From assembly GCF_964204645.1 (NCBI RefSeq), contig NC_134032.1, forward strand, positions 11,458,275 to 11,522,274: a stretch of 64,000 nt of DNA. The letters run 5' to 3'. Below, one piece after another: positions 38,269-64,000 of the stretch. The position numbers and the translations under genes were made by a program. The notes under the pieces are model-generated. The model saw only the letters and a program-made list of their open reading frames with translations, did not search any database and had not been told where the DNA came from. Position 1 is the first letter of the stretch, and each line of letters opens with the position of its first letter. The stretch is from Tubulanus polymorphus (taxonomy: Eukaryota > Animalia > Nemertea).

Positions 38269-38416
38269 ATGTTGCTGTTGGAAGGTGTCGAGGTGCACGT
38301 ACGCGAGGATGCATTTAAAAGTTGTCTGCGTCGACACATGGATTGGTTAGATGAATTAGTTATTGATGCTGATGATAATACCTGGTTTAGATGGATGTCT
38401 AGACGTCAAACTAAAG
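38269..38416 (+). CDS. Constant module D first coding exon (49-aa domain)
   Basis: ATG at 38269 with an in-frame stop upstream; donor AAG|GTTCGT, phase 1. Confidence 0.85.
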
Positions 38417-38688
38417 GTTCGTCTTTAAAATCTCAATCCTCAAATTCAGTGATTTTTGGCCTTATAGAACTGTCAATGTATTTAGAAATGGAAGGGGTAT
38501 AAATGGAACTGGTGTACTAAACCAGGTGATAGGATGCTTAGAAAAATTTAAGGGGTAACAATTGGCTTAGTTTAGGTATATATAGACCTATTAGTTATTG
38601 AGGGTCAGAAATATGAAATATTAAGTGACTCTAAAGTAGTTTAATCATTGTTAAGTTCCCTGTCAATATTTGTTTTCTTTGTATTCAG

Positions 38689-39882
38689 GTCAGAGAAGAG
38701 GACAAATGAATCAAATGTCCGGAGATGGAGGTGTTATGTACATCGGAACAAATCAATCAAAAACTGGACAAAAAAGACGATTTGAAGTTCAAAGCAGAAC
38801 AAAAACTGTCGCTCAGAACGTATTAAAAGCCGTGAAACGTCGGAGAGGAGGTGCAGCTGTACCGGGGACGTTACCACAGCAACGAGTTCAATCACAAACA
38901 ATGACGGCTGTCGGGCAGCAACCGATCGGTCTGTTACCAGCTCAACAGAGAATGACGCCCAATCGAGGAGGTCGCGGAAGAGGAAGAGGACGAGGTTTAC
39001 CTCCTCGTCATGTTTCACCAGCTATGAACATTCCTCCCATGAATATGGGAAACCAATCCGGAGTCCGTCAAATATCACCGGCTAATAGTGTTCGTAATCT
39101 CAATACTCAGTTTCAACAACAGAGGACGCCACCTCGTCCTATTACACAGACAACACCCATTAAACCAGCTCCACCTGGTGGTGAATCACCGAGAATATCG
39201 TTACAATCAGGAATAGACTTGAAACCATCGGTTACCAACGTCGTATCGCAGCAACAATTGAATGAATCTGAGAATGTTGTGTCATCGACGGCAACAGCTC
39301 CGGTCAGCTCAGCATCGGCAGAAACTGTCAATTTCTCAGTTCTAGATTCGACAGGATGTGAAATATTATCGAGTGCCGAAATTGAATCGACTTTAGAAAG
39401 TATTAAAAATGCTGAGGAGGAATCGAATGATTCTACGATTCCCGACGATTCAAATGTTGACGCGGCCTCGACGAATCAAAATGAAACTAACACCGAACAG
39501 CCGAGTGAAAGTGGATTATCGACACCCCCGCCCCCGGCGGTCTCCAGCTGCGATAACGCATTAGAACAATTAGAATCAATCGTAAGTTCCGCTCCATCGT
39601 TCGATCAATTAGAACTGTCTAGCAGCGCCACCTGTGGCGAAAACATCGAACTAAAATATAGCGAGCAATTAACTGATACAAACACTGCCAATATCAATAC
39701 GCTTCCATTCCAACAATCGCATCATCACCAAGGTTACGGCAGCGTTAAAAATGAACCGATGAAAATAGAACCGGTTGAAATATCGTCAGGAAGCGACGAT
39801 GATGAAGATTATTCAACTCAACAAATCATGCAGCAACAACATGATCCACAACCGGGAACGAGTGGCGGCTTTAATCATTCTG
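38689..39882 (+). CDS. Constant module D large exon (NLS-like, RGG, SUMO/SIM-like)
   Basis: Acceptor TTTGTATTCAG|GT; donor TCTG|GTAGGT at 39882/39883, phase 1. Confidence 0.85.
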
Positions 39883-40163
39883 GTAGGTGTTAACTGCCAT
39901 TTTGTTTATTCAATTATTTATTCATTTAGGGTCAAGTTTTAAAAACCACATTTTGCAAATTCAAAAAAACCACTCATTTGCCATCAATCCAGTTTTGCTT
40001 GGTTAATTGAACAAAAAATTTAGGCCCTTGTTTTTTTTTCAAGTTTTTTTTTTGGTGCTGAGAAATAGAATTCTAATTCCGTATTGATTTTTAAAAAAGA
40101 GGAAATAAAGGTAGCTTTGAGTTACATCGCTAGTTATATTTTGCGGATCTGTGGTTTTTGTAG

Positions 40164-40180
40164 CTCGTCCCATGCAGTAA
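40164..40180 (+). CDS. Candidate micro terminal exon D-V0 (ARPMQ*)
   Basis: Acceptor-like GGATCTGTGGTTTTTGTAG|CT inside a ~48-nt block identical in C and D. Confidence 0.5.
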
Positions 40181-43079
40181 ACAAGGTCTCATGAAATATG
40201 TTAAGTTATCAGGTCGCAGAGTGAATGAATGAGTAACCTTCATCGGAATTATAGCGAATGTCAAATATTAGGAAGATTTAATCCTGTGTATGAACTTAAG
40301 GCCCTAGTGTCCGTAGGGTAAATCCCATTACGGTTAAAGTTTAGGATGAATCATAGGGCTTGAACTTTTGTGCTTATAGTTAAGGTCTATAGACTAGATT
40401 TGAATTCAGTCTCTTGACTGCGCGAAGTTGGAACCAGATTCACATTGATCTTGAGTATTTTACTAAAATTGTTAGGGTTCAGATTTAGCAGGATTTGATT
40501 TCAGACACTAATGGTTGAAGGCACCACACAGCGCGGGTCCAGCTCTCACCCGAGCTTGTGCCAACCATGAAAAAAGATTGTGCGTTTCGCAAACTTCTTA
40601 GACAGCAGGCCGGGATTTGCAAATTTATTTATCGTTTAATTCAGGAAGAACAAATTTATTTATCGTTTAATTCTGACAAAAATTTCAAGCATATGATAAC
40701 GATGCACGATTTTCATATAAAAGAATAACAGCTGTTGTCGATTGTAGATTTATGATACGTAGTCAACGAAAGCCGTCATGCCCTGAGTTCATTGCGCTCC
40801 GTGGCGCGTTCGCCGCCTTGCGGTGATACAGTGCTGCCCCCTGGTAGCACGGGGCTATTGAATAGTCGGCGTCATATCATGAATGATAAGCGAGCATTCG
40901 GAATGAAGCGGAGTGGGTTGGTACTGTAGAGCTAGTTACATAGTCAGCTTTTGCTTGCAATTTGAACCAACGAGCATTGGGAATGAAACAGAGAGCATGC
41001 CGACATTGCCAGCCAATCAGGAACTGTGTCGTTCCCGCGTGCCAGACTTCAAATATCTTAACAGTGAATAAGAGGTATTAGCTTCAAATATACTCATAGT
41101 GGCGCTGGCTGAACTACCCAATAACTCCTATAGTAGCCAGCAACTGCGTTAAAACTCATATCATAACATAGTTGGAGGAAATAGGACAAGTCGAGGTTGA
41201 TACCGCTCTCATTTCTTTGCCGTTAAGAAAGAATTCCCCGTCGCGTGGGAAGAATATCAGAGCGTTAGGAAGAGTAGGAACTAGATGAAATTTAGAAATA
41301 TCAGTTTGAATACGAACAGTATCGGCCGCTCTACTCTATTACTGCATTGTTTATACTCAAAGATTTGAATCTTATTTGCGGGGGGGGGGGGGGGGTAAGG
41401 AGTTTTCTAAGTAAGTAATATCAGACCTTGTTTCTGCATGAAATATTTTACGATTCGAGGAGGCTCGTGTTCGAAAGTTGTCCCTTCCTCCGTGAGTTTT
41501 GAATCCAATTTGAAATCGTTGAAAAATTATTTCAATTCGATCTCCCTGTTAAACGACATCTAGAAATTCGCCTCGAGAGTTTGAATTTTTGCGACAGCTT
41601 TTGAACCGGACCCAGCACGCATGTCATAGGTTGATTAGTCAGAATTACAGTCGGTACATATCCGGGCTATTGTAGAGACGAAAGATTTGAAAATTAACAA
41701 GTTTTACTTAGAAAAAAAAGTAATTTTGCTTGAAATTGATATTGTTGTCTGGTACTCAGCGATTGAGGATGTATCAGAATCTGACGCAGTCTCTGGTAGA
41801 TGGGTCAGAAGTACAATTGACGACTATTTTGACTTCGAACCTGTGACAAGCGTGCGCGTTATATATGCACTACCTAGTGACTAAATAAGGTTCGCACGGA
41901 ACCCAGTTCTGCAATAGTGTGAGTTAGAGAATTTTGTTGAATAATTGAAGTGAACTGATTCTAAATTGGGAGTAGTTGCATTCGAACTGGCGATATTGCG
42001 GAACTGGGTCCTGATGAGAATCTCTGTACGCATTAGTTTGATGCTTGCTATAATTCCGAAGCGACAGTAGACTCGTTTTGTTTGAGGCTAGTCTCGAGAA
42101 ATTCTTTCCGGTTTAACGGGGAAAAAACTAGTTTGAGAAATTCTGTCTTTGAGATGAATATGTACATTGTTAATCCGGTGATACCAGTGTACTACCGATC
42201 CATCTCTCACTCAATGGAATTCCAATTATTAGGGAAATATGAACTGTTCAATCTGGGCTTCGGAAACGGGTAAAATTATACCTTCGGGGAACTAGGCGAC
42301 TATAGAGTCTACTGTCAAACCTTGTAGCAAGCTTTTGCGAAATACATGTTCTGTTTATTTCTTGAATGCTATGTTCGCTGAAAATGAGAAACTTTCTGAA
42401 ACTTGAGTGACTTAAACGCTATCGCGAAATACTTCGCCGATTCTTGAATCGTATCTCTCGCAATTGAAGCGAAAGATGAAAGATCAACATAGATCATTCT
42501 TTGAAGACGAGTACTGATTTAGAGAGACTCATTTTGTTGTGAACCGGTATTACGCTCTTTTATGAAGTATGTTTGAACCTCAGATATGTTAGAGGGCGGG
42601 GCGGGGGAAATTGGCAGTTCGCAAATTTAGCAAGTCTTGGAAAATTTAGCGTACCGGAACAAACACACTTTATAAAGAGATCTTACTTGCGGAGCTGGTT
42701 CTACAGTCATGACTTGTTATCAGACAAAGTTAAGATCGAGTTTGATAAGAGTTTCAAGCCTCAATTTTTAGATCATGAGTCCTGTAGTGGAACCAGGCCC
42801 ATAAATGTTTGTATTTCAGGCGACCCTTAAGCAACTGTATATATTCCATGACTCACCGTTATATTTGATGTCAGCTGCGAGGAACAGGATTTTTCTAGGT
42901 CTCGTCATTTTCCCCAGGATACGGAATCTTATTTTTTTCTTCTGACCGTCATTTCACGTTCAAGTCAATTAAACGCCGCTTAAGTTTTAAGTCCTCGGGA
43001 AATTTGTTCTGACCCCCTTTCGTACGTAACGTCATTATTTAAACGCACGCATATCATCGGTTCTCATGGCTCTTTCCAG

Positions 43080-43453
43080 GTGGCGCTTTCACCGACGAGC
43101 CATGGGAACCAACCACTTCCGGAATGCGGTGGCCGATCGTCAACCGTAAAAATACTGCGTCGCAACGAAAACCCAACATCGACGGATCACGGAGATATTA
43201 CTCTGCGCCCAGTATGTCAATAACAGCTCCACCTGTGGACAAATCCAAGAAATATAAATGTCGTTTTTGCGAAAAGCAGTTCCGAGGATTTATCGATTTA
43301 ACGCGACACGAACGCGTGCACACCGGCGAACGTCCGTTTAAATGTCCGATGTGCGATTTGAGATTCACGCAGAAAGCTCATCGTAAAGGTCATCTAGAAC
43401 GTCGTCATAACTTCAACATGGAAACATTCGCGATTCAGGAACTCGGAAACTAG
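43080..43453 (+). CDS. Variable terminal exon D-V1 (2 C2H2)
   Basis: GGTTCTCATGGCTCTTTCCAG|GT, phase 1. Confidence 0.85.
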
Positions 43454-43685
43454 CAGACTGATTCCACAAACTAGCAGACTGATTTCATAAACTAGCAGAT
43501 TGATTTCACAAGCTAGCAGACTGATTTCACAAACTAGCAAATTGATTTCACAAACTAGCAGACTGATTGAACTGATTTCATAAACTAGCAGACTGATTGG
43601 ACTGATTTCATAAACTAGCGGACTGATTCCATAAACTAGCGGACTGATTCCATAAACTAGCAGACTGATTTCACAATCTAGCAGA
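43448..43685. repeat. 21-bp minisatellite starting at the D-V1 stop codon
   Basis: AACTAGCAGACTGATTTCACA, ~10 copies. Confidence 0.9.
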
Positions 43686-43756
43686 AACATTTTTGACATT
43701 TTGGGGTTAAAAACACAATTTTGCTCTCTAATCATAAATCTATTTCGTTCTTCCAG

Positions 43757-44100
43757 CTTTGTGGATTCAACCACTTCAGTCGTCATTGACAACAATGGCT
43801 GATGACACGCTTCAACAGCCATCGTTACCATGGCAACAATCGACGTATCAATACGGATATCAGCGTAATAACCGTAACCACGGCGATGTGGGCGATAAAC
43901 CGTTTCAGTGTCAGTTTTGCGATAAGCGTTTCACGTGTTTGTCTAAAGTGACGCGACACGAGCGCGTTCACACCGGTAACCGACCGTTTAAATGCCCCAT
44001 GTGCGAATATTTCTTTAAAACGAAATGCGACCGAAAACGTCACCTGATACGAGTTCATAAATTCAATACGGAATTATTCTCGCTGAAAGATAAAGATTGA
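43757..44100 (+). CDS. Variable terminal exon D-V2
   Basis: TTCTTCCAG|CT, phase 1; 2 C2H2. Confidence 0.85.
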
Positions 44101-44173
44101 TCGTTGTTAGACTCGGACGCCATCTATTAGTCATAACTGAAATTATAACGAAGGTTCTCATGGCTTTTTGCAG

Positions 44174-44550
44174 GTAGCCGAATCGCCGTGCCACATCTAT
44201 TGCCATGGGAACCGTCTGAGGAGGCGACAATGGCGACGGTTGCTACGACTGCGCTATGGTTACCGGTGATTCCGACGATGACTCCGCCGGGTTCTAAGGA
44301 CCGCGCGGCGCGTTTAGGCGATTCGCGCACGGCCGGTCCGGACTATTGTTCGAAGAACCCGATGAATAAAAATAAACATCGGTGTCGGATTTGTAATAAA
44401 CGGTTTTTGAAACCGTCGGGTTTGGTTCGTCACGAGCGCGTACATACCGGTGAACGTCCCTTCGCGTGTCCCATCTGTAACAGATTGTTCTCTCAAAAAT
44501 TTAACCTGAAAACGCACGTGGAAAAAGTTCACGGTTTCGGTAAAATTTAA
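44174..44550 (+). CDS. Variable terminal exon D-V3
   Basis: GGTTCTCATGGCTTTTTGCAG|GT, phase 1; 2 C2H2. Confidence 0.85.
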
Positions 44551-44932
44551 CCAGATTGAATGAAGAGATGTTTCACCCTCTCATACAACAGGAGTAAGCA
44601 ACGCTAACAATAAATAGATTATTAATTCAAGTTCTTCGTAATATGCCAAAACTTGTTTATTTATTCTAGTTAATGATTTGGAAATAAATTTTATAGCATG
44701 AGTCGAAAATATATCTTTGTTTTACACATATTTATTTTTGTCCAAAGATTTTCGATATTCTTCGACTTTCAATTTCATTATAGATGATCTACTTGATTTT
44801 TCTGGTCGCTCGTCTTGGAATGAGTATATACCTATTTTTTGGCGCATTTATTTATTAGTTACTGTAGTAACTCTTGCCGACATTTGTTACTGCTACAGTT
44901 AGTAACGCTATGGTTCTCGTGGCTCTTTGCAG

Positions 44933-45225
44933 GTTTCCGCCGCGAGACGCCATGGGAACCGCAGCCGACCGTCGTCCAACTGGGCGGCTTGACGTACGGA
45001 CTTCTGACGGGTGGCGCCATCGGCGGGGAAAGTAAGAAATACAGGTGTCAGTTTTGCGATAAAGGATTTTCGTCGCCCGCCGAGTTGACGCGACACGAGC
45101 GAATTCACACCGGCGAAAAACCGTTCGAATGCCCAACGTGCAAGCTACGTTTCAACCAGAAAGGAAATTGCAAAAAGCACATGAAACGCGTTCATAACTT
45201 CGACCCAAACGCATTCGATTTCTAG
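44933..45225 (+). CDS. Variable terminal exon D-V4
   Basis: GGTTCTCGTGGCTCTTTGCAG|GT, phase 1; 2 C2H2. Confidence 0.85.
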
Positions 45226-46108
45226 ATACGATAAATCGCCGATAATCGGACAATCATTGTTTATCCTATTTTCATCCTTGTTATTATCGGAATGGTTTTA
45301 AAAATCTCGAGACTGTCGCATTCGAAATGCATGATTCGATGTTATCAGTTTTCTTAATGCAAAATATTGTTATGTCCTATGATTGTATTCACACTGATTA
45401 GAATTCACCATTAATTTTACACCAGTTGTTCGAATTCCCGCTGGTTCAAACAGTCGCGTCGGAAACATATATGAAATGTTGTTGACATGCCTTGAATTAA
45501 TATCTATCATCCATCAAAAACAGACTATAGTTTTCTTATCTTCAATTTTAGGGAGTAATTTTGGTATTTTAGTTTTCGACGCGGAAGAGTGGCCAAAAAG
45601 GTTGTTTTCTAAAAATGCCTTTCTACCTAGACGAGCTATGATGACCGAGCCTTTTGTTCAGAAGCTGCGATCTGTTCATATGTTACTCAAGCGGTTGTAA
45701 GATTAATCTAATGAACAGGATTAAAAATGAAGATTTCCTTCGCGTTTGTCTTTAAAAAAATTGTACGAATGAGAAACTATTTTTAACATTCAATGTGCGA
45801 GTTATATATCAATCAGAAAAGAAACCATTAATGGCATATGAAACACCATCTTCGCTTCCCTGGCCGCAGACTACTTTCTTATACATCGCCCAATATTTTG
45901 AGCGGCAACCAGTCTATAAATCTAGCCAATCAGCTGCATTGTTTTTCACGGGCAGATTCGCTGTATCAATGCAACGCATCCGATTGGCTAGATGTATCGA
46001 CTGGTGGGCGCTGAGCGGCAACCTTTCCGCCCAAGAAATCTATGGCATGGATTCAGAGGCTGAATTGTGTAGATGTAGCTTAAACCGGATTCTCACGACT
46101 CTTTGTAG

Positions 46109-46485
46109 GTGTCGGATACCACGTGCCGTATGGATCACTGCAATTTGTTGAACAGCGCCATCTACCGTCGTGGGATACCGTGCCTCAATATCGATGGCCC
46201 GTACACGGCGACGACGTCGCGGGAACGCGTCTAAGCGGCGACACCTATGCAACGCGGTCAAAACCGCCGCCGTCGACCGGTGGCGATGGTGATCAAAAAC
46301 ACCGATGCGAACGCTGCGGCAAAGGGTTTAAGCACCTTTGGCATTTGACGCGACACGCGCTCGTTCACACCGGTGAGAAACCGTTCACGTGTCCGATGTG
46401 CGAGCAATGTTTCAATCGCAAGTCGAGTTGTATGAGACACATGAAACACGTTCATAAATTTGACCGAAATCGATTCGATTTATGA
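46109..46485 (+). CDS. Variable terminal exon D-V5
   Basis: GGATTCTCACGACTCTTTGTAG|GT, phase 1; 2 C2H2. Confidence 0.85.
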
Positions 46486-47645: not shown

Positions 47646-48004
47646 GTTCCCTACACAAGACCCCGTTGACCTGGGGACCGAACAATGCAATAACTGAATA
47701 TGAAGGGGTTTACGTTCAACCGGGTAGTAGTTCTAGCGGCGCCGTCTGGGAAACGAAATCTTTACCGAAGGCTAGTGGCGCCGCCGGTGGTGATAACAAG
47801 AAACATAACTGTCGATATTGCGATAAAGGATTCGCCCACCTGTGGCATTTGACGGCGCACGAGCGAATTCACACCGGCGAAAAACCGTTTAAATGTCCCA
47901 TGTGCGAACAACGTTTCAATCAGAAATCAAGCTGTAATCGTCACATGAAAACCGTTCATAACTTCGACCCTCACGCGTTCAACGTTTTGATGGAGATGTC
48001 ATAG
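47646..48004 (+). CDS. Variable terminal exon D-V6
   Basis: GATTCTCATGTTGCAG|GT, phase 1; 2 C2H2. Confidence 0.85.
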
Positions 48005-48651: not shown

Positions 48652-49031
48652 GTCTCCGACACGAGTTCTCATCAGTTGGACTAAGCCTGCTCTCCGCGGG
48701 GATGACCGAAACCGCTCGAAACCGATTCGATGTAGCGAACGGATACGAAGGGGTTAATTTCGAATCGAGTAGTACTAGTGGCGCCATCCGTGGATCAAGG
48801 TCGAACGCGATGACCGGTGGTGCCATCAGTGGCGATAACAAGAAACATAAATGTCAGTTTTGCGGTAAAGGGTTTAATTATCCGGCTGAATTGACGCGGC
48901 ACAAGCGAATTCACACCGGTGAAAAACCGTTCGAATGCCCGGTGTGCAAGCTACGTTTCAATTGGAAGTCGAGTTGCGATAGACACACGAAGCACGTTCA
49001 TAATTTCGACTCGAATGCGAACAATTTTTAG
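48652..49031 (+). CDS. Variable terminal exon D-V7
   Basis: GGATTCTCATGACTCTTTGCAG|GT, phase 1; 2 C2H2. Confidence 0.85.
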
Positions 49032-49226: not shown

Positions 49227-49912
49227 GTGTCCGATGCAAGTTGTCATGGGAACCGGTGCCGATCGTCGGACTAAGCCGTCTACCGTCGTGGAAGGTCAAG
49301 GCTAAAGGGCGATCAAAAGACGCGACCGAACGAGAAGGTATGGACGTTGAACCGGATCAGACTAGTAGCGACACGTCCGGGTCGATATCTACGCCGTCGA
49401 CCGGTGGCGCCACCGGTGCCGAGGGTAAGAAACACCGTTGTCGGTTTTGCGATAAAGCGTTCAGCGAACGCGGGAATATGGTGCAACACGAGCGAATTCA
49501 CACCGGCGAACGACCGTTCGAATGTCCGATGTGCGAGCTACGTTTCACACAGAAATCGAACCTCAAAACGCACATGAGACGCATCCACAACTTCGACCGG
49601 AGCAGTTTGACCGTAACATTGTCAGGGATGGTCGACGCCGGGAACGAAGACGACGCTGACGTGACGCCGCGCGGCCAATCAATCGCTAGCGGTGCTGGCG
49701 CCGCCACCGGTGGCGCCGGCAAGAAAAACAAATGTCAGTTCTGCGACAAAGGGTTCAAGTCTCGTTTGGAATTGGCACGACACGAGCGCGTGCACACCGG
49801 CGAAAAGCCGTTCCAGTGTCCGATGTGCGAGTTGTGTTTCAACCAGAAAGGAAACTGTCACCGACACATGAAGGTCGTTCATAACTTCGACGTGAACGCA
49901 TGCGATTTTTAG
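49227..49912 (+). CDS. Variable terminal exon D-V8 (two fused ZF doublets)
   Basis: GGATTCTCATGGCTCTTTGCAG|GT, phase 1. Confidence 0.85.
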
Positions 49913-50160: not shown

Positions 50161-51146
50161 GTGTCGGATACGACGTGCCGCGTGAATTGTTGCCGTCCGT
50201 TAGATTAAGCCGTCTGCCGACCGCTACGATCGACGCCAGCGTTTGCTTAAACGTCGGGACCGGATACGAAGGGGATGACGCGAAACCGGGCGGTTCTAGC
50301 GGAGACCCGGATGGGTCGAAGTCGAAACCGACGACGGAAACCAGCGCCTCGGGTGGCGTAATGAAACAATGCGAATGTCACTTGCGCCGTAACGGATTTA
50401 GTCGCGCCGTGTTAAACGCGCGACACAAGCGAAAACGCGCCCGCGAAAAGCTTTTCAAATGTCGGACATGCGAGTTAACTTTTATCGATTTATCGAACCT
50501 TAATCGGCACGTGAAACAGATTCATACCGACGAAAAACCGTTTACGTGTCGGTTTTGCGACAAAAGGTTCATCTTTCCCAACCAATTGACGCAACACGAG
50601 CTGATGCACTCGGGCAAAAAACCGTTCAAATGTCCGATGTGCGAGAAATATTTCACGCAGACGTCGACGCGTAATCGACACGTGAAACAGATTCACACCG
50701 ACGACGAACAGCCATTCGCGTGTCGGTTCTGCGATAAAGCGTTCAACGCTCGCGCCGATCGTAATCGACACGAGCGAATTCACACCGTCGAAAAACCGTT
50801 GGCGTGTCGGTTCTGCGATAAAGCGTTCAATAATCGCGGCGATTGTAATCGACACGAGCGAATTTACACCGGCGAAAAACCGTTTAAATGTCCGACGTGT
50901 GAGAAATGTTTTGTGCTGAAATCACATTGTCAACAGCACGTTAAAATGGTTCATATCAACGAACGAGCGTTCGCGTGTATGTTCTGTGATAAAGCGTTCA
51001 ATACTCGCGCCGATTGTAATCGACACGAGCGAATTCACACCGGCGAAAAACCGTTCGAATGTCCGACGTGCAAGAAACGTTTCAATCTGAAGGATAACCG
51101 TAATCGGCATTTGAAAAGAATTCATAACAGTGAAAACCCGTCTTAA
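50161..51146 (+). CDS. Variable terminal exon D-V9 (~8 C2H2)
   Basis: GATTCTCTTAACGACTCTTTGCAG|GT, phase 1. Confidence 0.85.
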
Positions 51147-51530
51147 TGTTCGACGCGCGAGCTACATTTCACACAGAAATCGAACCTCAAAACGCGCATT
51201 AGACGCATCCACAACATCGTCCAGAGCAGTTTGACCGTAACATTGTCCCGGGTGGTCGACGCCGGGCACGAAGACGACGCTGACGTGACGCCGCGCCGCC
51301 AATCGATCGCTAGCGGTGTCTCCACCGGTGGTGTCGGCAAGAAAAACAAATGTCAGTTCTGCGACAAAGGGTTCAAGTCTCGTTTGGAATTGGTACGTCA
51401 CGAGCGCGTGCACACCGGCGAAAAGCCGTTCCAGTGTCCGATGTGCGAGTTGTGTTTCAAACAGAAAGGAAACTGTCACCGACACATGAAGGTCGTTCAT
51501 AACTTCGACGTGAACGCGTGCGATTTTTAG
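51147..51530 (+). pseudogene. Orphan copy of the 3' half of D-V8 (no acceptor)
   Basis: Near-identical to ~49520-49912, fused behind the D-V9 stop. Confidence 0.7.
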
Positions 51531-51806: not shown

Positions 51807-52537
51807 GTGTCGGATATGACGTGCCGCGTGAATTGTTGCCGTCCGTTAGATTAAGCCGTCTGCCGTCCGCGACGATCGACGCCCGTGTTTGGTTAAACGT
51901 CGGGACCGGATACGAAGGGGATGACGCGAAACCGGGCGGTTCTAGCGGAGACCCGGATGGGTCGAAGTCGAAACCGACGACGGAAACCAGCGCCTCTGGT
52001 GGCGTAATGAAACAGCGTGAATGCCAGTTGCGTCGTAAAGGATTTAGTCACGTTGCGTTTAATGTGCGTCACAAGCGAAAACGCGCCCGCGATAAGCTTT
52101 TCAAATGTCAGGTATGCGAGTTAACTTTTACCGATTTATCGAACCTTAATCGGCACATGAAACAGATTCATACCAACGAAAAACCGTTTACGTGTCGGTT
52201 TTGCGACAAAAGGTTCATCTTTCCCAACCAATTGACGCGACACGAGCTGATGCACTCTGGCGAAAAACCGTTCAAATGTCCGATGTGCGAGAAATATTTC
52301 ACGCAGACGTCGACGCGTAATCGGCACGTGAAACGGATTCACACCGACGACGAACGACCGTTCGCGTGTCGGTTCTGCGATAAAGCGTTCAACGCTCGCG
52401 CCGATCGTAATCGACACGAGCGAATTCACACCGGCGAAAAACCGTTCGAATGTCCGACGTGCGAGAAACGTTTCAATCTGAAGGAGAATCGTAATCGGCA
52501 TTTGAAAACAGTTCATAACGGTGAAAAACCGTTTTAA
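51807..52537 (+). CDS. Variable terminal exon D-V10 (5 C2H2), duplicate of D-V9
   Basis: GGATTCTCTTAACGACTCTTTGCAG|GT, phase 1. Confidence 0.85.
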
Positions 52538-53274: not shown

Positions 53275-53999
53275 GTGTCGGATACGACGTGCCGCGTGAA
53301 TTATTGCCGTCCGTTAGACTCGATCGTCTGCCATCGGGGAAGGTCGATGCTCAAGGTCGGTCGTATTTAGCTCCTAGTGAAGGGGTTAACGCGAAACCCG
53401 GTTGTTCAAGTGGTGACGCAGATGGATCAGAGTCTAAACCGACGACTCGTGGCACCATTCACACCGATGTAAAACCGTTTACATGTCCGATGTGCGAGCA
53501 GCGTTTTATGCGTATGTCAAATCGTACCCGGCACATGAAACGGTTTCATAGCAAGGAAAAACCGCACGTGTGCCAGTTTTGCCATAAAGGGTTCATTTTT
53601 CTCCGCCAATTGCAGCGGCACGGGCAAATACACGCCGGCGTAAAACTATTCAAATGTCCGATTTGCGATCAGGGTTTCAGTCAGAAAGTAAACCGTAAAC
53701 GACACATCGAAACAGTTCATAACAACGTAAAACCGTTTAAATGTCCGACGTGCAAGCGGCGATTTACGCAGAAATGGAATTGCGAAGCGCACATGAGTAG
53801 AGTTCATTACGACACCAAACCGTTTAAATGTCCGATGTGCAGGTTAGGTTTTAACCAGAAATCCGGCCGTAACTGGCACATGAGGACGTTTCATAAGAAT
53901 GAAAAACCGTTCGAATGTCCGATTTGCAAGGTATGGTATAAGCTGAAATCGAGCTGTAGACGGCACATGCGAATGGCTCATCAAGGAACGACCCGTTAG
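53275..53999 (+). CDS. Variable terminal exon D-V11 (6 C2H2)
   Basis: GATTCTCTCAAAACTCTTTGCAG|GT, phase 1. Confidence 0.85.
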
Positions 54000-55088: not shown

Positions 55089-55480
55089 GTGTCGGATGCA
55101 AGTTGCCATGGGAACCACAGCCCAATGTTGGACGCTGCTTTCAGTCCGCTGATAGGAGCCAGGCTCAAGGTCGATTCATGGTAGCACACGAATATCAAGG
55201 GGTTAACGTAGGCATGGGTAGTACTAGCGGCGCCACTGGTCAACCACTATCTCAAGCGATAGCTGGCGGCACGGCGAGTGCCGATATAAAAAAATATAAA
55301 TGCCAGTTTTGCGGTAAAGGGTTTAGCCAGAACGGAAATCTGAAGCAACACGAGCGAATTCACACCGGCGAAAAACCGTTCAAATGTCCGATGTGCGAGC
55401 TACGTTTCACGCAGAAATCGAACCGTAAAGGTCACATGAAACGCGTTCATAACTTCGATCAGAATACATTCGATTTCTGA
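55089..55480 (+). CDS. Variable terminal exon D-V12
   Basis: GGATTCTCATGGCTCTTTGCAG|GT, phase 1; 2 C2H2. Confidence 0.85.
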
Positions 55481-55859
55481 ATATCAGTTTGGACATCCAA
55501 AAAGATCGTGAGTTAAAGATTAATGGTTTAGACGACGTTAGGGAATTAGATAGAAAGAATGGAAAGTGTTATACAGTTTTTACATTATTCCTCTTCATAT
55601 GTGACCAGTATGTTTTATATTTTTTATTCTGTACATTCTAAGAAGCTGAATTGACTACTGGATTTGAGACTAACATTGTTAAGTTCGTTTTGACTGGTAA
55701 TGTGCGGGTAAAGAGTCGTTCCTAGATTGATTATTTGTCGGCCCTGATGTGTTCATGTTGTTCAAGCATGCGTTCAAGAATTTTAATGATGTGTATCCAA
55801 GGTATAAATAGATATAAGATTCATAAACGAAAATTGTCTTAACTTTGTGTCTCAAACAG

Positions 55860-56110
55860 TTGGAACCTTGACAGTGATAGAGTTTCTTGATGCAGTTCTT
55901 TGAGGACTCCACCCCGACTATTGATAGTTTGAATACTGAGACAGTGATAGAGTTTCTTCATGCAGATCTTTTAGGACTCCACTCCGACAATCGATAGTTT
56001 GAATCCTGACAGTGACATAGTTTCTTTATGCAGTTCTTTGAGGACTCTGTCGCGACAATTGATAGTTTGAATCCTGACAATGACTGAATTTCTTTCTGCT
56101 GTTTTTCCCT
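55860..56110 (+). repeat. ~68-bp intronic tandem repeat recurring through the arrays
   Basis: Core GACAATTGATAGTTTGAATCCTGACAGTGACAGAGTTTCT..GCAGTTCTTTGAGGACTCC; further copies before other variable exons. Confidence 0.8.
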
Positions 56111-56298
56111 GAGTTCTTGAACCCAGGCTTTTTTATGAAGGGACAGTATTCGTCAACTATTGATTGCTTATACCCTAAAATATCACCAGTTGCTATATTC
56201 TCGCTAGGATGAATTGTGTAAAGAGAACGACATAAAATGCATGGAAAACATAAAATGAAATTAGAAATTAAAATCTGGATTCTCGCGGCTCTTTGCAG

Positions 56299-56705
56299 GT
56301 CTCTCGTGCGAGGTACCGTGTGCCATGTCTGTTGGACGACGCCGCCAATCGGCTGTTAAGGTCGATGCTCAAGGTCGATTGGAAGTTGAAACGGCTTGTA
56401 CTAGTGGCGCCGCCGATGCGAAAAGCGATAAATTCAAATGTCGATATTGCGATAGAGGATTTGCGTTTCGCGCGATCTGGATCCGACACGAGCGTACGCA
56501 CACCGGCGAAAAACCGTTCAAATGCGCGATATGCGATCAACGTTTCAATCTGAAGGGAAACCGTAAATTGCACGTGGAACGCGTTCATTCCGATGAAAAA
56601 CCGTTCAAGTGTCCGATGTGCGAGAAATGTTTCAATCGTAAAGGCAACCGCAAACGTCACATCGAATGCGTTCATAACTTCAACCCGAATGCGTTCGGTT
56701 TTTGA
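56299..56705 (+). CDS. Variable terminal exon D-V13 (3 C2H2)
   Basis: GGATTCTCGCGGCTCTTTGCAG|GT, phase 1. Confidence 0.85.
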
Positions 56706-57031
56706 ATTCTAGATTGAATATCGACTGGCGTAGACAATATCGTCTTTTAACTCGGTTCTCCAACCCGAATGATGACAGTAACAGATTTCCTTTCAGTGGT
56801 TCTTCTCAGAGCTCTGAACTGCTTCTCATAGTTTGAAGCTTATAGTCGTAGGATTTTTTGGAATTTGTAGTGGAACATCATTGACCCCACCTTTTCAAGG
56901 GGCGTTATTCGTCTTTGCGCACTGGTACCCTAATATTCACCAGTTGTCAAATTGTCACTGAATTATGTTATAAAATGCTCATGTACTCATGTACCATGAA
57001 TTTAAATCTGGATTCTCACAACTCTTTGTAG

Positions 57032-57558
57032 GTTCTGAGCGCGAGGTGCCATGGCAACCAGCGCCACCTGTTGAACGCCGCTGTCAATCGACTCGAGGTC
57101 GATTGAAAGGGGCCGATGTCGAACCGGTTGGTACTAGTGGCGCCACCGACGTGGACGGCAGATTCAAATGCGAATATTGCGATAGGACGTTTATTTTTCG
57201 CGCGATCTGGATCCGTCACGAACGCGTGCACACCGGCGAAAAACCGTTCAAATGCGCGACGTGTGGGCAACGTTTCGCGCAGAAATCCAGCCGCGACCGG
57301 CATACGAAATCGGTTCACAACGTCGACCCGAATAGTAACCTGTCATTAAGGAGAGCGGAGGCTCGTCGATGTCGGTTTTGCGATCGAGCGTTCAATTTTC
57401 CCGCGGAGCGTAAACGTCACGAGCGAATTCACACCGGCGAAAAACCGTTTAAATGTCCGACGTGCGAACAGCCTTTTTCGCAGAAATCGAGCGTTATAAG
57501 ACACATGAAAGGCACGCAGAAATGCAACTTGGATACATGCGATGTTTTTGATTATTGA
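57032..57558 (+). CDS. Variable terminal exon D-V14 (two doublets, last finger degenerate)
   Basis: GGATTCTCACAACTCTTTGTAG|GT, phase 1. Confidence 0.85.
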
Positions 57559-58058
57559 TATTTTCTGAAATGGTCGTTTTAAGTTGAGATTATTCTTCAA
57601 GTCGAAAGCATTTATGATTGATTATATGTCGGCTGTGTGTTTGTGTTATTCAAGCAATGTAACAATATTAGAATGGATGTTTGGATTAAATGCTGATATC
57701 ATCACCTTTGTGGTCTTTTAACTCAAAACACCAGTCTTGACAGAGGCCCTTCTCATTCTCAGGTTCTCTGAGCTCTCCAACCCTAACAATTGATACGTTT
57801 GAATATTGACAGAGACCAACTTCATTTTGAGGTTCTCCTCTGAGGTCCAACCTTGACAAATTGATATAGTTTGAATCCTGACTGAGACCAACTTCATTCC
57901 GTGGTTCTTCTCTGAGCTCTTCAACCCCTGACGATTGATATAGTTTGAATGTTAATGGCGATTCTATAGCTAGCCCCTTGGACTTAGACGACGTGGGCGC
58001 TCAATCGTATGATCACAAAAATACTAACTAAAATCTGGATTCTGATGGCTATTTGCAG

Positions 58059-58390
58059 GTGCTGCGACCGGACTGCTGTGGAATCCCGGATTCGACGCTC
58101 ACGCCGACGTCATCAGAAGTCGACAACCTTTCCTGGGATTACGCAGAAAGCCGGTCGATCACGATACGCGTCGCAAACACGCGTGCAGCTATTGCGAAAA
58201 ACGTTTCCTATCGTCGGGCGATTTGAAACGACACGAGCGAATTCACACCGGGGAAAAACCGTTCGAATGTCCGATGTGCGAGCAACGTTTCACGCAGAAA
58301 GTCACGCGTAAATTACATCTGCAACGCGTTCATAATATCAACATGGAATTATTCACGCTGAAAGACTTATTCACGCTGAAAGACTCGTGA
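58059..58390 (+). CDS. Variable terminal exon D-V15 (2 C2H2; not in ORF track)
   Basis: GGATTCTGATGGCTATTTGCAG|GT; 110 codons including the stop, [11 protein letters not shown]...[17 protein letters not shown]...LKDS*. Confidence 0.85.
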
Positions 58391-58767
58391 AAAAAAAACG
58401 ACGCGAATCAAGTTTTCGATTGATGGCGGATTTGAAAAGGTCTCGAGTCCACAGGTTCCACGCGTAGAAATCAAGATATCCATTGAATGAGTTACTTTTG
58501 GGAAATTTTCAATCGAAACAGCATTTAAAACCTTTAGTAGTTAAAACCTATTTTTCCCAGCTTACTATTCATTGACAAAAAATATTTCTATCATCCAGAT
58601 TTATGACACCAAAAAAAATCTAAAAACAAATTATTTTAGAATTATGACTTGTTGAATTTTTCTATCGACCGACAAGAAACTGTTTTTAATTTTCTGTCGA
58701 AAATTTATGTTGATGTGAAATCTTAACCTTCAAGTTTACTGATGATGGTTCTCATGGCTTTTTACAG

Positions 58768-59102
58768 GTGGGTACTTCCCCGCGCCGACACACGCGTTGC
58801 CATGGGAACCAGAATTCTACATCGGCGACGGTAACTACGACGACGGCGGCGACGGTAACTACGGAGCTGCGCAACAATCGACGTCGCCGACGACGATGAG
58901 TTTACGTCGGAATTACGAGTGTCAACACTGCCTGCGGCGGTTCATGTGTCGACGCGATCTGACGCGACACGAACGCGTTCACACCGGCGAACGTCCGTTC
59001 AAGTGCCCGATCTGTACGAGGTCGTTCGTGCAAAAGGTCCATCGCAAAAGTCACCTGCGTAAAGTTCATCAGTTCGACCTCGATTTACTCAACGATAAAT
59101 AG
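58768..59102 (+). CDS. Variable terminal exon D-V16
   Basis: GGTTCTCATGGCTTTTTACAG|GT, phase 1; 2 C2H2. Confidence 0.85.
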
Positions 59103-59126
59103 ATGTCAGGTCGTGACTGTTGTAGG

Positions 59127-59241
59127 TCGAATATCTCATTGAATGTCAGACGTTTGAGGTCGGATATCTCAATGAATGTCGGACGTTTGAGGTCGGATAT
59201 CTCAATGAATGTCGGACATTTGAGGTTGGATATCTCAATGG
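59127..59241. repeat. 33-bp minisatellite, ~3.5 copies
   Basis: TCGGATATCTCAATGAATGTCGGACGTTTGAGG. Confidence 0.8.
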
Positions 59242-59700
59242 ATTCGTAATGATGACTCGATCCTTCGATTCTAGTTGCCGGCTGATTTTTTATTTTGATT
59301 GTCGTCAGTCTAGAAATGCTACGTACTCGTGTGCTCGTAGTGATGATATTGTACTTGGGAATATGGTACTCATTTTTGAGAGAAATTCAGTTACTTTTGC
59401 CGTTTGACAAAAATCGACTCTCGGAGTAAAACTTATTATTAAGTTATTGTGTTGACAGTTGACACCCCCCTCCCACTTTTAACCCCATAATCAGATTCAA
59501 TTTTAAGAACAGGTTATACCCTTTCATCCCTGTTGCTATGGTTATAATCTCGTCGTCCTGATCGAGGTCATGTACTCGTCCCGGTTTTGGGTTAAAATCG
59601 ATTTCGTTAATAGATTATGTAATCATCGTTTTTAGTAATCTAAAATAAAGTCGAATTTTATCGATTAATTCTCAAGCGTTTTCGCCTCGATTATTTGTAG

Positions 59701-59999
59701 GTTTCGCCGCCGGTGAGCACGTTCATCTACACGAGTTGTTGGCAGCACCGCCTACCGGACAGCGGTCGTCGGACGGCCGGACGACGGGATCGAAGGAGCA
59801 TCGGTGTCGATTTTGCGGTAAACGGTTCACAGCGCCGTCGTTGCTCACGCGACACGAGAGGACGCACACCGGCGAGAAACGGTTTAAGTGCCCGTTGTGC
59901 GCGCGTCCGTTTTCGCAGAAAGCGCATTGTAAAGATCATCTGAGACGCGTGCATCGATTTACGATGAATGTTCTTAGCGATTTAGGAGGATATATGTGA
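59701..59999 (+). CDS. Variable terminal exon D-V17
   Basis: ATTATTTGTAG|GT, phase 1; 2 C2H2. Confidence 0.8.
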
Positions 60000-60285
60000 A
60001 ACGGACTATAAACAGCGGCTTCCGGTGATATTCTGTACCAGACAGTGGACTACGACCCTTAATCAATGCGGTAGACTCTACCTCCCTCGGATTTATGCAT
60101 TTGCGGACGGAATCTTCGACATTTTCCTCTCAATTCATACAACAGAGACCTAAAGTCACTTCGTCTGCCTGAAAATTCACTTACCTTCTTTGTAAATCTA
60201 TGTGTAATAATTGGTCCTGCAAAATCCGAAGCAAGCCGTGACTTCTGTGATAAAGTTTACCGAATGTAGTGAATTTAGTAGTCAA

Positions 60286-60421
60286 GGGCCGGTTCCATAG
60301 ACGGCTTAGACTTAAGACCAGTATAAGACAAACTTAGTTCTATAGCCAATCTAACAACTTAAGACCAGTCTTAAGGTTTAAGACCAGTTTTGGTCTTAGG
60401 TCTTGACTATGGAACTGGCCC
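60286..60421. mobile_element. Short MITE
   Basis: GGGCCGGTTCCATAG ... CTATGGAACTGGCCC. Confidence 0.7.
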
Positions 60422-60645
60422 CAAGAGTTTGTCGGGTTAATGACCTGATTTCGTCCATGTTATGCTGTGTGGTGCCGGTTGGATTTGATTGGACTGAGAG
60501 TACTTGTCCCAGATACACGTTTAAATCCTCACTCATTTTCAAAAAAGGTTGTTCCGTATTCATCAAATGCTGACTGAATAATGCCATATTGAGCCCAGTT
60601 AACGGATTCATAAACTTGGTTCGTTCAAACTTCGTATACCTAATT

Positions 60646-60862
60646 CAGAGTTGCCAACTATTTCTGATTTTCGGTATTTGTTACTGTTTTGAGGAATACT
60701 GATTTCATTTATTTGATGTGTACAGAAATATGAAAGATGTTACTGAGGGTCTTACTGTTGATTAGTGATTAATTCAAGCATTTCCCTTCATGTTTCGATG
60801 AAATGTTACGGAAAAAGTATCAATTCGTTGCTGATAGCACTTTTCAGAGGTTGGCAGCTCTG
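60646..60862. mobile_element. MITE
   Basis: TIR CAGAGTTGCCAAC / GTTGGCAGCTCTG; CTAATT duplicated on both flanks. Confidence 0.7.
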
Positions 60863-61105
60863 CTAATTAAGCAAATACCGAGTCTAACCATTCATAGGTG
60901 GATTTACGATAATATATTCTTCAGCGTCAAATAGCATTTGAAATAAGAAAGTGAGATCCCTATATATTCAAGTATGTGCTTACATGGTATGGTGGCATAT
61001 GTAATTGTTAATTGTAATCACTGTAAATGAAAATTTCAATTCAATTTGAAATAAAGGCATTTTTTCCGATAAATACTCAAGAGTTCTTGCCTCCATTATT
61101 TGTAG

Positions 61106-61383
61106 GTTTTGCCGGTGAGCAGTTGGCAGCGCCACCTACGGGACGACGTCAATTATCGGACAGCCGTACGGGAACGAAGAAACACGCGTGTAGATTTTGT
61201 AGCAAATGCTTTCGGGCTCCGTCGCTGCTCGCGCGACACGTCAGGTCGCACACCGGCGAAAAACAGTTTAAATGTCCGTTGTGCGCGCGTCCGTTCGCTC
61301 ACAAGTCGCACTGTAAAGACCATCTTAAACGCGTGCACGGTTTCGATGTAGACGTCCTTAAAGATCTACGAGGATATCTATAA
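61106..61383 (+). CDS. Variable terminal exon D-V18 (paralog of D-V17)
   Basis: ATTATTTGTAG|GT, phase 1; 2 C2H2. Confidence 0.8.
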
Positions 61384-61851
61384 AAAACAATTCGAAGTTT
61401 TCTCGTAGAAATCTACGCCGATTGCCAATAGACCGGTACCTGAATCAGTAAAGAAGTCGCTTTAAGTGTAGGATTTTATACTGAGTTTGAGAAGCAGACT
61501 CTGTCTCCTATTTCTTTGATGTCTGTATCCGTAGTTGGGAAAGGAGATGACTATATCAGATCTGTGCTGGAGTAGCAATCTGTTGTTGGAAATAATTGGT
61601 AGTCCTAGTTTTTCGAGGTTCTAGCCTGGATTAAGTGAATACATGTACAAAATGAACGGGGCCGAATTGACCCATGCATTTTGATACAATACCGTTTGTA
61701 CTACTCTGAAGATCTAAGGCAGGTTCTTGCTGTAGTCCCAAAGCATAAGCCTGGCAACTGTAGCCAAGCAACTCTACCAAAGTGATTTCGCCATTGTTAT
61801 CGGAGATGCCCTGTTCGATATGTTCGCTAATGATTCGTCGCTTATTTTTAG

Positions 61852-62156
61852 GTGGTGCCCCGGTTACTGGACAACAGCTCTCCGGCGACGGACTTTATCC
61901 GACTGTTCGGTCATCGAGGACGACCGCGACGACGACCTCGTTTCGCGTGAAAAAACACGAATGTCGATATTGCCCGAAACGCTTTATGACTCCCTTCTTG
62001 GTCAAACGACATGAATGTACCCACACCGGATACCGGCCGTACTATTGCCCTGTTTGTATGCGCGCGTTCACGCAGAAGGTCAGCATCAAACGCCATTTGT
62101 TCAATGTGCACGGACTGAACGAGCTGAAACATTTCCACGATTTCGGACTCCGTTGA
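61852..62156 (+). CDS. Variable terminal exon D-V19
   Basis: CTTATTTTTAG|GT, phase 1; 2 C2H2. Confidence 0.8.
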
Positions 62157-62661
62157 AAAACGCTTCGCGGCAAAATATGAACAGCGAAAAATGCTTTTTT
62201 CGTATAATTGATATGACTTTGAACAATCTTAATTTCACCGTGACAATCTGACATCTGGTTTGTCATCATTTTTTCACTTGATGTATTCAAATGGACTGCG
62301 AGTTTTATTCGGTTTCACGAGGATTATGAGAGGCGAGGCTTCACAGATGGTTTTGACGTTATCTTTAGCGACAGTTGCTACTGGAGGCATAACGTTAGGT
62401 GCGAATTTTCCTCGATTCAGTTTCAAAATCGTGAGTTAGATTTACCTCTGCGGTGAAATTATTTTGTAAGGAACTCGTCTGAATTATAGATTTTAAGATC
62501 TGAACCTACAATTCAGAAACTGGGAGTTGTGAAATTTTGAGAATTCGGGAAATATTTGAACTCCTGAATCTATGATGTTATGATGTAACTATTACTCAAA
62601 ACTCTTTGTCACAAAAAAAGAATTATTTTTTGTAACCAGTTTCCTAATCGGCATTTTGCAG

Positions 62662-63029
62662 GTTATCCGACTTACGACCCGCTTGCTGCGCAATTCGGGA
62701 CTGGTGGCGCCGTCTACGATCATCAGCGACAGTACGTTAACCTGCCGGTGAGCGACGCCGCCAAACGCGTAGATTTCTCGGATTTGCTTCCGTCTGCCGA
62801 GAAGAAGCCTCACGTCTGTTCGATTTGCGGCAAGAACTTCGCATATTTGTCGCTGTTGAAGGCTCACTTACGCAGCCACACCGGCGAGAAACCGTTCGAA
62901 TGTCGCATCTGCACACAGGCATTCTCGATGAAGGGCAATCTGATGGCGCACATGAAAAGCAAACACAATATCGATAAAACGATCATCAAAGAGTTGTTTC
63001 GGCAGACGGCGCGTAGTATGGACCCGTAA
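62662..63029 (+). CDS. Variable terminal exon D-V20
   Basis: CCTAATCGGCATTTTGCAG|GT, phase 1, open into ORF 62748-63029. Confidence 0.8.
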
Positions 63030-63546
63030 CACGAAAACATCTCGAATAGAAACTGACAATCCAACAGAGTAAGGATTGAGAGACAATGGTAGAGCTGAAT
63101 GTTTTTGACTTTTTTGAGTTTCTTAAGTAGTTGTTTAAACCGAATGCATGCGAAATGGACCTTTACCGGGAACGAAACTGGAGCGGGAATGAAATAGAAA
63201 TCGAAGTGGAATTCAAACTTTTCAACGGCAACTTTTCAACGGATTGTTAACCCGCTTCTACTGGCATATCACAGGACCTGGTCGAAGAATTTCCTCATTT
63301 TTTTTCTAAATCTTTAGATGCCCTGCGTCAATTCGAAATTAGACTCACTGAATTCAGTTCCACAGTTGTGAATCAAATTTGACTGAAGTTTATTTACGTA
63401 AGACCCCCTCCCCAAAATCTATTTTAGAACCCCAGCTATATCTTAAAGCCCTTATTTTAACAAAAGCATATTTGTTGGATTTTGAGGACCACTCATTTCT
63501 AACTAGAGTTGAAGTTTTCTAACACAATTTTTGTGCAATTTTGCAG

Positions 63547-64000
63547 GTTCGCACCGGTTCTTCCCTGGTATGCCAGTAGGTGGCGGTAGCGCGCCGATGT
63601 ATCATCATCAACAACAACAACAGCAAATGTTTTATCAATCGAAACCGATAACTGCAGGTAGGGGGCGCCCTCGCGGAAGCAGGGGTGGACGAGGTCGACC
63701 AGTATCGCGTTCTGTCGGCGAGATGGCGCCGCCGTTTCAGCAGCAGCAGCAGCAGCAGGCGCCTCAACCCAGTGGCGGCGGGAGTCGAATTTTATACGAC
63801 GAGGAATCGGGCGAGAAACGCTACGTTTGTTCGTCGTGCGGCAAATCGTACGCGTCGAAGTCGGCGTTGGCAATTCACAATCGTACGCACTCCGGCGAGA
63901 AACCGTTCAACTGTCGCATCTGTCAACAGGCGTTCCGTCAGAAGGGGCACCTGATGTCGCACCTGAAACGCATTCACAACATCGACCAGTCGTTCATCGA
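63547..64000 (+). CDS. Variable terminal exon D-V21 (polyQ, AT-hook-like motif, 2 C2H2; runs off window)
   Basis: AATTTTGCAG|GT, phase 1; ...GRGRPRG...CSSCGKSYASKSALAIHNRTHSGEKPFNCRIC...HLKRIH. Confidence 0.8.

Follow-up and report, generated by a model that had tools for sequence, protein, structure and literature searches.

In Drosophila, the lola gene places constant 5' exons ahead of about 20 co-oriented alternative 3' exons, most of which encode a finger pair and carry their own stop, and its isoforms are made by both cis and trans splicing. The constant part of lola holds a TTK-type BTB domain, and this domain family is restricted to arthropods (PMC11426971). The mod(mdg4) gene yields more than 30 isoforms by combining common exons with one 3' variable exon, and its last common intron contains conserved elements (PMC4387717, PMC6237743, PMC13490949); fruitless, broad and tramtrack also join a common N-terminus to alternative C-terminal finger pairs that alter target specificity (PMC3969260). 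Here we describe a locus of comparable layout in the nemertean Tubulanus polymorphus. The window that we analyzed is a stretch of 64,000 nucleotides (nt), C8:11,458,275-11,522,274, from a 16.68-Mb chromosome (16,677,571 bp) of the 268-Mb assembly, and positions below are counted from its first letter. We use the name gene D for the plus-strand gene that begins at 38269 and gene C for its head-to-head neighbor on the minus strand. We consider it likely that in gene D splicing joins a constant 5' part to a single finger-coding 3' segment out of a large set, each member of which is here called a cassette, so that a single N-terminus is combined with many sets of fingers. We show the anatomy of the locus, one splice junction, constraint on the cassettes as coding sequence and RefSeq isoforms of a similar kind in paralogs; we infer the use of the other cassettes, splicing in cis and a DNA-binding function.

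Gene D shares with lola the constant 5' exons followed by co-oriented alternative finger segments, and differs from it in having a 49-amino-acid (aa) domain without a Pfam match and no BTB domain, in its nemertean host, in its 34 cassettes and in a unit that is amplified at least 15-fold in one cluster. Because it lacks a BTB domain and its host is a nemertean, gene D is not a member of the lola, fru and broad family. The variable exons of mod(mdg4) encode domains of the FLYWCH type, are driven by separate promoters, are found in part on the other strand and reach the common exons through trans-splicing alone, whereas the cassettes of gene D are all co-oriented and of the C2H2 type and nothing at this locus requires trans-splicing. 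In fruitless, broad and tramtrack, unlike gene D, there are only 2 to 5 alternatives, a BTB domain and an insect host. The zinc-finger gene clusters of the KRAB, SCAN, ZAD and FiNZ types resemble our locus as lineage-specific, fast-evolving tandem C2H2 genes with an N-terminal family module and variability at the helix positions, but each of their genes has its own effector exon and a single array, while gene D has many arrays behind one effector part. The clustered protocadherins and UGT1A likewise consist of one locus with a constant part and tandem variable exons of which one is chosen, but with the polarity reversed, since at those loci it is the first exons that vary and that carry the promoters, and the proteins are unrelated.

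The constant part of gene D is made of two exons on the plus strand. Exon 1 (38269-38416, 148 nt) begins with an ATG, has 49 full codons and ends in the phase-1 donor AAG|GTTCGT, and exon 2 (38689-39882, 1,194 nt), a low-complexity exon that starts cag|GTCAGAG and ends CTG|GTAGGT, has 397 full codons. The joint between the two is in frame and the donor at 39882 is also in phase 1, which makes exon 2 a 1-1 exon, and the joined constant frame comes to 49 + 1 + 397 = 447 codons. A previous interpretation made from the letters alone (the sequence-only reading) had proposed exactly these two exons, with a phase-1 G|GTAGGT donor and about 447 residues, and had also seen no BTB, KRAB, SCAN or ZAD domain there; Pfam (E <= 0.01) agrees, finding none of the four and no family at all in exon 1 or exon 2. 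Three elements can be told apart in the constant part: one is the 49-aa domain, another is the motif KRRFEV..AQNVLKAVKRRR, which is basic, and the third is an extended disordered region with psi-K-x-E motifs and an acidic stretch at its end.

A regular-expression scan of all six frames for C-x2-4-C-x12-H-x3-5-H found fingers on the plus strand only from 43259 to the end of the window, and on the minus strand only from 30320 down to 8442. After 39882 the plus strand of the window holds 22 stop-to-stop finger frames, and 21 of these have a phase-1 acceptor that sits a few codons inside the open frame; the 22nd (51147-51527) is without an acceptor of its own and continues cassette 9 beyond its stop. 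Both the count and the coordinates of the 21 cassettes, each open from its acceptor to its own stop, are as the sequence-only reading had given them. The array runs on for 14 kb past the window, to window-equivalent position 78189, and gains 13 more cassettes there, for a total of 34 with acceptors, every one of them co-oriented, in phase 1 and with its own stop; acceptor, frame and stop are intact in 34 of the 35 finger frames of the gene. No cassette on the opposite strand lies inside the array, and no further exon 1 or constant exon was found from 39890 to 93366, the latter being the position of the next exon 1. The frame of a cassette opens a median of 34 nt 5' of the acceptor and stays open from the acceptor to the first finger, over a median of 197 nt. 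Within that interval an in-frame ATG is absent from 10 of the 21 cassettes in the window and from 15 of the 34 gene-wide, so the earlier statement that most cassettes lack a start codon of their own holds roughly, but not as a majority. A crude acceptor score blind to the reading frame settled on a site in phase 1 for 27 of 35 cassettes, and for 23 of the 35 that site was open as well, whereas chance alone would give about one third at most. Pfam recognized C2H2 fingers (PF00096 or PF13465) in all three cassettes tested, and the finger units follow C-x2-C-x12-H-x3-5-H with TGEKP-type linkers.

The transcript evidence was drawn from the contigs of four sequencing runs over 39700-45699; no run is recorded as RNA, and that one of them, X2, is RNA is judged from its behavior. 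Contig depths were summed over contigs at least 90% alike and are accordingly rough. The summed depth in X2 is 2109 at the end of the constant exon, 1 to 7 over most of the intron and 56 to 459 on cassettes 1 to 3, and a depth so strongly biased toward exons (2109 against 1 to 7) indicates that X2 holds spliced RNA. An X2 contig of 265 nt (depth 47.7) matches 39856-39881/2 with its first 26 nt and 43079/80-43317 with the rest. It therefore skips 3,197 nt with GT..AG ends and represents the junction 39882->43080, which is the predicted splice to cassette 1 (43080-43453, two fingers, TAG stop) and was the first of the junctions that the sequence-only reading had offered as a check on its proposal; no other cassette has a directly observed junction from 39882. 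The 26-nt anchor differs at 4 or more positions from the other constant-exon copies in the fetched stretch, save for one copy 140 kb away that differs only at position -2, and the 3-nt ambiguity at the joint fits the ...CTG of gene D and not ...CAG. Because both the anchor and the ambiguity fit the end of gene D, we read the junction as one between a gene D exon and a gene D cassette. Two further X2 contigs contain the end of the constant exon, followed in one of them by GT, and then sequence whose only alignment is to the conserved fingers of cassette 4. That finger stretch is matched at 90% or more by six more cassettes of gene D and no single cassette can be credited with it, and the two contigs are probably junctions to other cassettes.

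The same run also speaks to how the cassettes end. Cassette 2 (43757-44100, two fingers, TGA) and cassette 3 (44174-44550, two fingers, TAA) are crossed by an 854-nt X2 contig that is colinear with the genome from 43642 to 44495, through the stop of cassette 2 and into cassette 3, so that this stop is kept in the RNA and the two cassettes are not spliced together. X2 contigs cover the stretch between 43079 and about 44700 without a gap, and their depth drops to zero over 44700-44899, just past AATAAA at 44609 and 44683, and for this reason cassettes 1 to 3 appear to end at one shared transcript end near 44700. Coverage restarts at about 44900, near the acceptor of cassette 4, and continues past 45699. 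Run X5 (2015, possibly RNA) had no contigs that matched 39700-45699.

Comparison with gene C gives a measure of constraint, as the two genes are an inverted duplication with an identity of 98.6% in exon 1, 91.9% in exon 2 and 70-73% in the introns. Gene C (LOC141910365; 32343-33797, minus strand) has its exon 1 at 33797-33650, its exon 2 at 33536-32343 and its cassettes from 29785 down to 17376. Between the two genes the ratio of non-synonymous to synonymous substitution rates (dN/dS) is 0.15 for exon 2, exon 1 shows zero non-synonymous changes, and cassette 2 has a ratio of about 0.1 against its gene C copy. We also used a longer comparison stretch of 224 kb, made of the window and the 160 kb to its right, which contains 12 copies of exon 1 and about 110 finger frames, 85 of them with a recognizable acceptor. 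Pooled over 46 pairs of nearest-paralog cassettes from this stretch, which are not independent of one another, dN/dS is 0.55 before the fingers and 0.39 in the fingers. With its value of 0.55 the pre-finger stretch behaves as coding sequence, which would not be expected were translation to begin inside the cassette, at an ATG close to the fingers. In gene D, distal cassettes 31 to 36 kb from the donor have mirror partners in the gene C array (76282-17617 and 70702-19278), with a finger dN/dS of 0.24-0.49 for these pairs. Among 38 aligned finger pairs, the DNA-contacting helix positions are the most variable columns.

RefSeq models of the paralogs provide the remaining support. The constant exon matches two T. 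polymorphus RefSeq models. The constant donor leads to the third cassette of the gene in P0002 (LOC141909526), where two cassettes are skipped, and also in P0024 (LOC141910369), to the first cassette in P0020 (LOC141910368), and to the second in P0025 (LOC141910365, that is, gene C), where the joint reads 'DQS|ALWIQPLQ' and the acceptor is equivalent to 43757 of gene D. For P0002 and P0025, no encoding contig of this genome was on record. The X1 and X2 isoforms of LOC141901926, on another chromosome, are identical over residues 1-198 and then have unrelated finger tails that start with D... and G..., which fits a phase-1 junction after G. The X1 and X2 isoforms of LOC141909516 also differ in their 3' parts. 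X1 of this gene splices its constant exon, the copy at the left edge, in frame to constant exon 2 of the next gene, which is feasible because exon 2 is a 1-1 exon. The isoforms of LOC141909519 contain two or three constant units in series. Several RefSeq models are clearly artefacts. In P0023, P0024 and P0025 cassettes are chained through their stops into models of 1,200-1,600 aa that translate an intronic 'WFSWLFAG' as protein, and XP_074657199.1 (LOC141910365, 1577 aa; 8409-33797, minus strand) runs over the frameshifted constant exon of its neighbor (14584-13753) into the cassettes of that neighbor. The sequence-only reading had raised the possibility that an automated annotation would split such a locus into dozens of tiny zinc-finger genes, and RefSeq has instead strung the cassettes together. 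We take these models as support for constant-to-cassette junctions and for alternative ends, and not for full lengths, since the colinear X2 contig across cassettes 2 and 3 contradicts the chaining.

Taken at face value, these observations would be explained if the donor at 39882 were joined to a single acceptor chosen from the many phase-1 sites downstream of it, of which the window has 21 and the whole gene 34. Each acceptor would open a self-contained segment with 24-100 variable codons, 2 to 7 C2H2 fingers and its own stop, and one gene would thus give many proteins with a common N-terminus and differing DNA-reading fingers. The likeliest mechanism would be a cis choice among alternative 3' splice sites together with alternative transcript ends, where several adjacent cassettes would share one transcript end.

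Several points weigh against this explanation. Only one junction of gene D was seen, it comes from one short contig, the type of the run is inferred, and a retrocopy may be the source of that 265-nt contig; junctions to 43757 and 44174 are absent among the junctions listed. The RefSeq models are partly artefactual, as described above. Some cassettes of the sister arrays have decayed, the gene C copy of cassette 1 being broken, and cassette 3 has a dN/dS of about 1 against its gene C copy. Lastly, only 20 of 35 cassettes have AATAAA or ATTAAA within 600 nt behind their stop, close to the chance level given the base composition, so that for many of them no end signal can readily be assigned. This last point fits shared transcript ends. 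Because cassettes 1 to 3 appear to share an end and the hexamers are not enriched, alternative 3' splice sites within composite terminal exons fit better than 21 separate terminal exons as in the sequence-only reading, whose constant 5' part with alternative finger segments stands.

One alternative takes up some of these points and holds that only the cassettes close to the donor are spliced, most of the array being young duplicates that are unused, decaying or shaped by gene conversion. The only junction observed is indeed that of cassette 1, and to the broken cassettes of the sister arrays and the high ratio of cassette 3 can be added the identity of cassettes 2 and 3 to their gene C copies (98% and 95%), which suggests conversion. 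Nevertheless, a largely unused array does not sit well with 34 intact finger frames out of 35, with a pooled dN/dS below 1 that extends to the pre-finger stretch, with distal cassettes kept in both mirror copies, or with paralog models that skip the proximal cassettes. We judge this alternative improbable and an array of mostly dead duplicates unlikely; individual cassettes may still be dead.

A second departure from a simple choice of one acceptor comes from the acceptors themselves. All 34 have an A-rich branch-point-like element (TTAAAAYC, CTAAC or ATAAC) about 25-30 nt upstream, followed in most of them by GGATTCTCATGGCTCTTTGCAG, and the typical joint is GGATTCTCATGGCTCTTTGCAG|GT. The exon begins with GT, giving AG|GT, at 28 of the 34 gene D cassettes and at 65 of the 85 across the whole 224-kb stretch. 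The junction codon is made of G + GT and the T in its third position is synonymous, yet T is found in all 28 cassettes that have G at +1, while GGT accounts for 26% of the 332 glycine codons in the same cassette exons and positions +3 to +8 are free to vary. The excess of T over the usage of GGT therefore points to a non-coding constraint on a synonymous site. AG|GT is the layout of a recursive (ratchet-point) splice site, and CTG|GT... is regenerated after splicing. On the shared phase 1 and the AG|GT junction one may build the proposal of a nemertean, lola-like diversity generator on a new N-terminal domain, with exons freely combinable within and across genes into hundreds of factors. Transcripts would then be re-spliced stepwise, hopping from cassette to cassette within a gene, and would also be joined across neighboring genes, in a 225-kb cluster of about 15 constant units and more than 100 cassettes. 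We find this extension doubtful. Positions +3 to +6 contain no GTRAGT or other 5' splice-site consensus and present 27 different hexamers, for which reason stepwise re-splicing is only a low-probability idea, and the plainer reading of AG|GT is an acceptor preference specific to the species or to a factor.

Under trans-splicing of the kind known from mod(mdg4) and lola, the cassettes would have promoters of their own and yield separate pre-mRNAs, which would then be linked to the constant transcript, perhaps even that of a paralogous gene. The depth of X2 in the 3.2-kb intron, far below that on the cassettes, would agree with this, but efficient cis splicing also gives a low intron depth. Phase 1 is common to the acceptors of the family, so any constant exon would fit any cassette; the one junction seen, nonetheless, joins the end of a gene D exon to a gene D cassette, and the array has no cassette on the opposite strand. 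The intron also contains a conserved block about 260 nt after the donor (40139-40197, plus strand), consisting of a cassette-acceptor-like GGATCTGTGGTTTTTGTAG|CT and then a 5-codon frame (ARPMQ) with a stop. It is 98% identical to the gene C copy, against 73% for the flanking intron, and six further copies lie about 200-260 nt after their donors, at window-equivalent 94807, 137230, 167406, 169276 and 170632 and, on the minus strand, at 32125-32069. On reading its sequence we saw no strong 5' splice-site-like or U1-type site, and we rejected the block as a U1-binding trans-splicing element like that of mod(mdg4). Its role as a micro terminal exon is weakened by the replacement of AG by TG in three paralog copies, and none of the junctions listed is spliced into it. 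The block is not always an acceptor and may be a decoy or a regulatory element. Overall, we hold trans-splicing at this locus to be highly improbable.

Still further from the data is the notion that the array encodes one very long poly-finger protein with the cassettes as successive internal exons, the arrangement given by the RefSeq models P0023, P0024 and P0025, which do chain them. A stop closes every cassette, the stops would have to be covered exactly by introns of about 50 nt, the intronic 'WFSWLFAG' would have to be read as protein, the gene C model crosses the broken constant exon of the neighboring gene, and the colinear X2 contig passes through the stop of cassette 2; there is very little chance that this is how the locus works. 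A set of independent small genes does not agree with the missing ATGs, with frames that open at the acceptor, or with the fact that no other exon lies upstream, and is contradicted by these features.

The cassettes of gene D within the window, all on the plus strand, differ in size and in number of fingers. Immediately 3' of cassette 1 is an array of 11.5 copies of a 21-nt tandem repeat (43447-43685), where contigs break. Cassette 4 (44933-45225) has two fingers, a TAG stop and no in-frame ATG, and is followed by cassettes 5 (46109-46485) and 6 (47646-48004), each with two fingers and no ATG, and by cassette 7 (48652-49031) with two fingers. The fingers then become more numerous: cassette 8 (49227-49912) has four in two pairs, cassette 9 (50161-51146) has seven with the two-finger read-on fragment 51147-51527 behind it, cassette 10 (51807-52537), a recent duplicate of cassette 9, has five, and cassette 11 (53275-53999), without an ATG, has six. 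Two fingers are found in cassette 12 (55089-55480) and three in both cassette 13 (56299-56705) and cassette 14 (57032-57558), the latter having no ATG. The remaining cassettes all have two fingers, and they are 15 (58059-58390, no ATG), 16 (58768-59102), 17 (59701-59999, no ATG), 18 (61106-61383, no ATG), 19 (61852-62156, no ATG), 20 (62662-63029, no ATG) and 21 (63547-64000), which extends 49 nt past the window to a stop at window-equivalent 64047-64049. Many cassettes carry a conserved motif, H-NFD-x-N-x-FDF or N-I/F-x-x-E/D-L-F, in their C-terminal tails (for example 45196-45222, 49883-49909 and 55451-55477), where it forms the extreme C-terminus after the last finger. A search of 5.8 billion proteins with the cassette protein at 55091-55477 returned only unrelated zinc-finger proteins of other animals and no fragments with a constant-exon end, and Rfam found no RNA family in the window. 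In the intron, an element at 41003-41043 that contains CCAGCCAATCAG (CCAAT-box-like) has, in each of the three runs, a contig depth far above that of the flanking sequence; its edges are a frequent break point of contigs and it is probably a dispersed repeat.

Gene D is not the single gene that the sequence-only reading supposed, but one of at least 15 clustered genes within a wider family in the genome. Fifteen copies of exon 1, with a protein identity of 90-100%, lie in a 225-kb cluster at C8:11,413,659-11,638,761, and about 18 diverged copies (30-72% identity) are spread over seven chromosomes. The six minus-strand genes of the cluster all lie to the left of its nine plus-strand genes, and this division means that the whole cluster is transcribed outward from a 4.5-kb center between genes C and D (33813-38253). 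The minus strand of the window has three more copies of the constant exon, at 33555-32335, at 14584-13753, which is frameshifted and at which the RefSeq model P0022 (199 aa) stops, and at 3400-1763. The last of these (region 1763-3650, minus strand) shows an internal threefold repeat and an open frame of 546 aa.

The N-terminal module of this family was also studied on its own. The 49-aa domain has the consensus L..CL..H.D.LDE.V..ADD.TW.RW, in which W39 and W42 are invariant, and its predicted fold is a beta-hairpin with three helices (predicted local distance difference test score, pLDDT, 83). Compared with the PDB by Foldseek, the model had no matching solved structure; the wide VIA-align search gave a top Z of 3.5, which for a helical model of this small size is noise, the top score of 0.82 from an ESM Atlas feature search is uninformative, and a homodimer prediction scored 0.00, which counts neither for nor against binding. 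A profile search of 1.84 billion representative proteins with the N-terminal domain matched 28 proteins, where every named match is a T. polymorphus RefSeq model and one without a name is a 78-aa NCBI fragment, so that by sequence the family of gene D is to date found only in Tubulanus polymorphus. Reading the sequences by eye, we found the basic motif, as KRR[FL][ED]..AQNVL[KR]AVKRRR, and a [VIM]-K-x-E-P motif followed by an acidic stretch, resembling a SUMO acceptor, repeated throughout the family. The 49-aa domain stands N-terminal to two to many C-terminal fingers in P0027, P0028, P0029, P0033, P0036, P0039 and P0041. It is followed by tails without fingers in P0026 and P0030, in which Pfam found no family. 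In P0031 (LOC141908832 X2; L022, C7:16169802-16169930, minus strand) it stands ahead of a homeodomain (Pfam E 8e-20), and this pairing with a homeodomain and not with fingers suggests that the domain is a general transcription-factor module in T. polymorphus.

To our knowledge, it is essentially in arthropod BTB genes (lola, mod(mdg4), fru and broad) that a constant effector part is followed by an array of alternative exons for DNA binding, and in the open-access papers we found no description of such a locus outside arthropods, nor of the family of gene D. The case described here has a different N-terminal module, up to 34 cassettes in a gene and a unit amplified about 15-fold. An independent origin outside insects is plausible; if our explanation is true, gene D would be an unrelated spiralian case and this way of multiplying transcription factors would be convergent, and the locus would be a natural comparison for how a donor chooses among dozens of acceptors over tens of kilobases. 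For T. polymorphus itself, the chaining of cassettes through stops in the RefSeq models affects the counts of finger genes and the orthology calls made from them.

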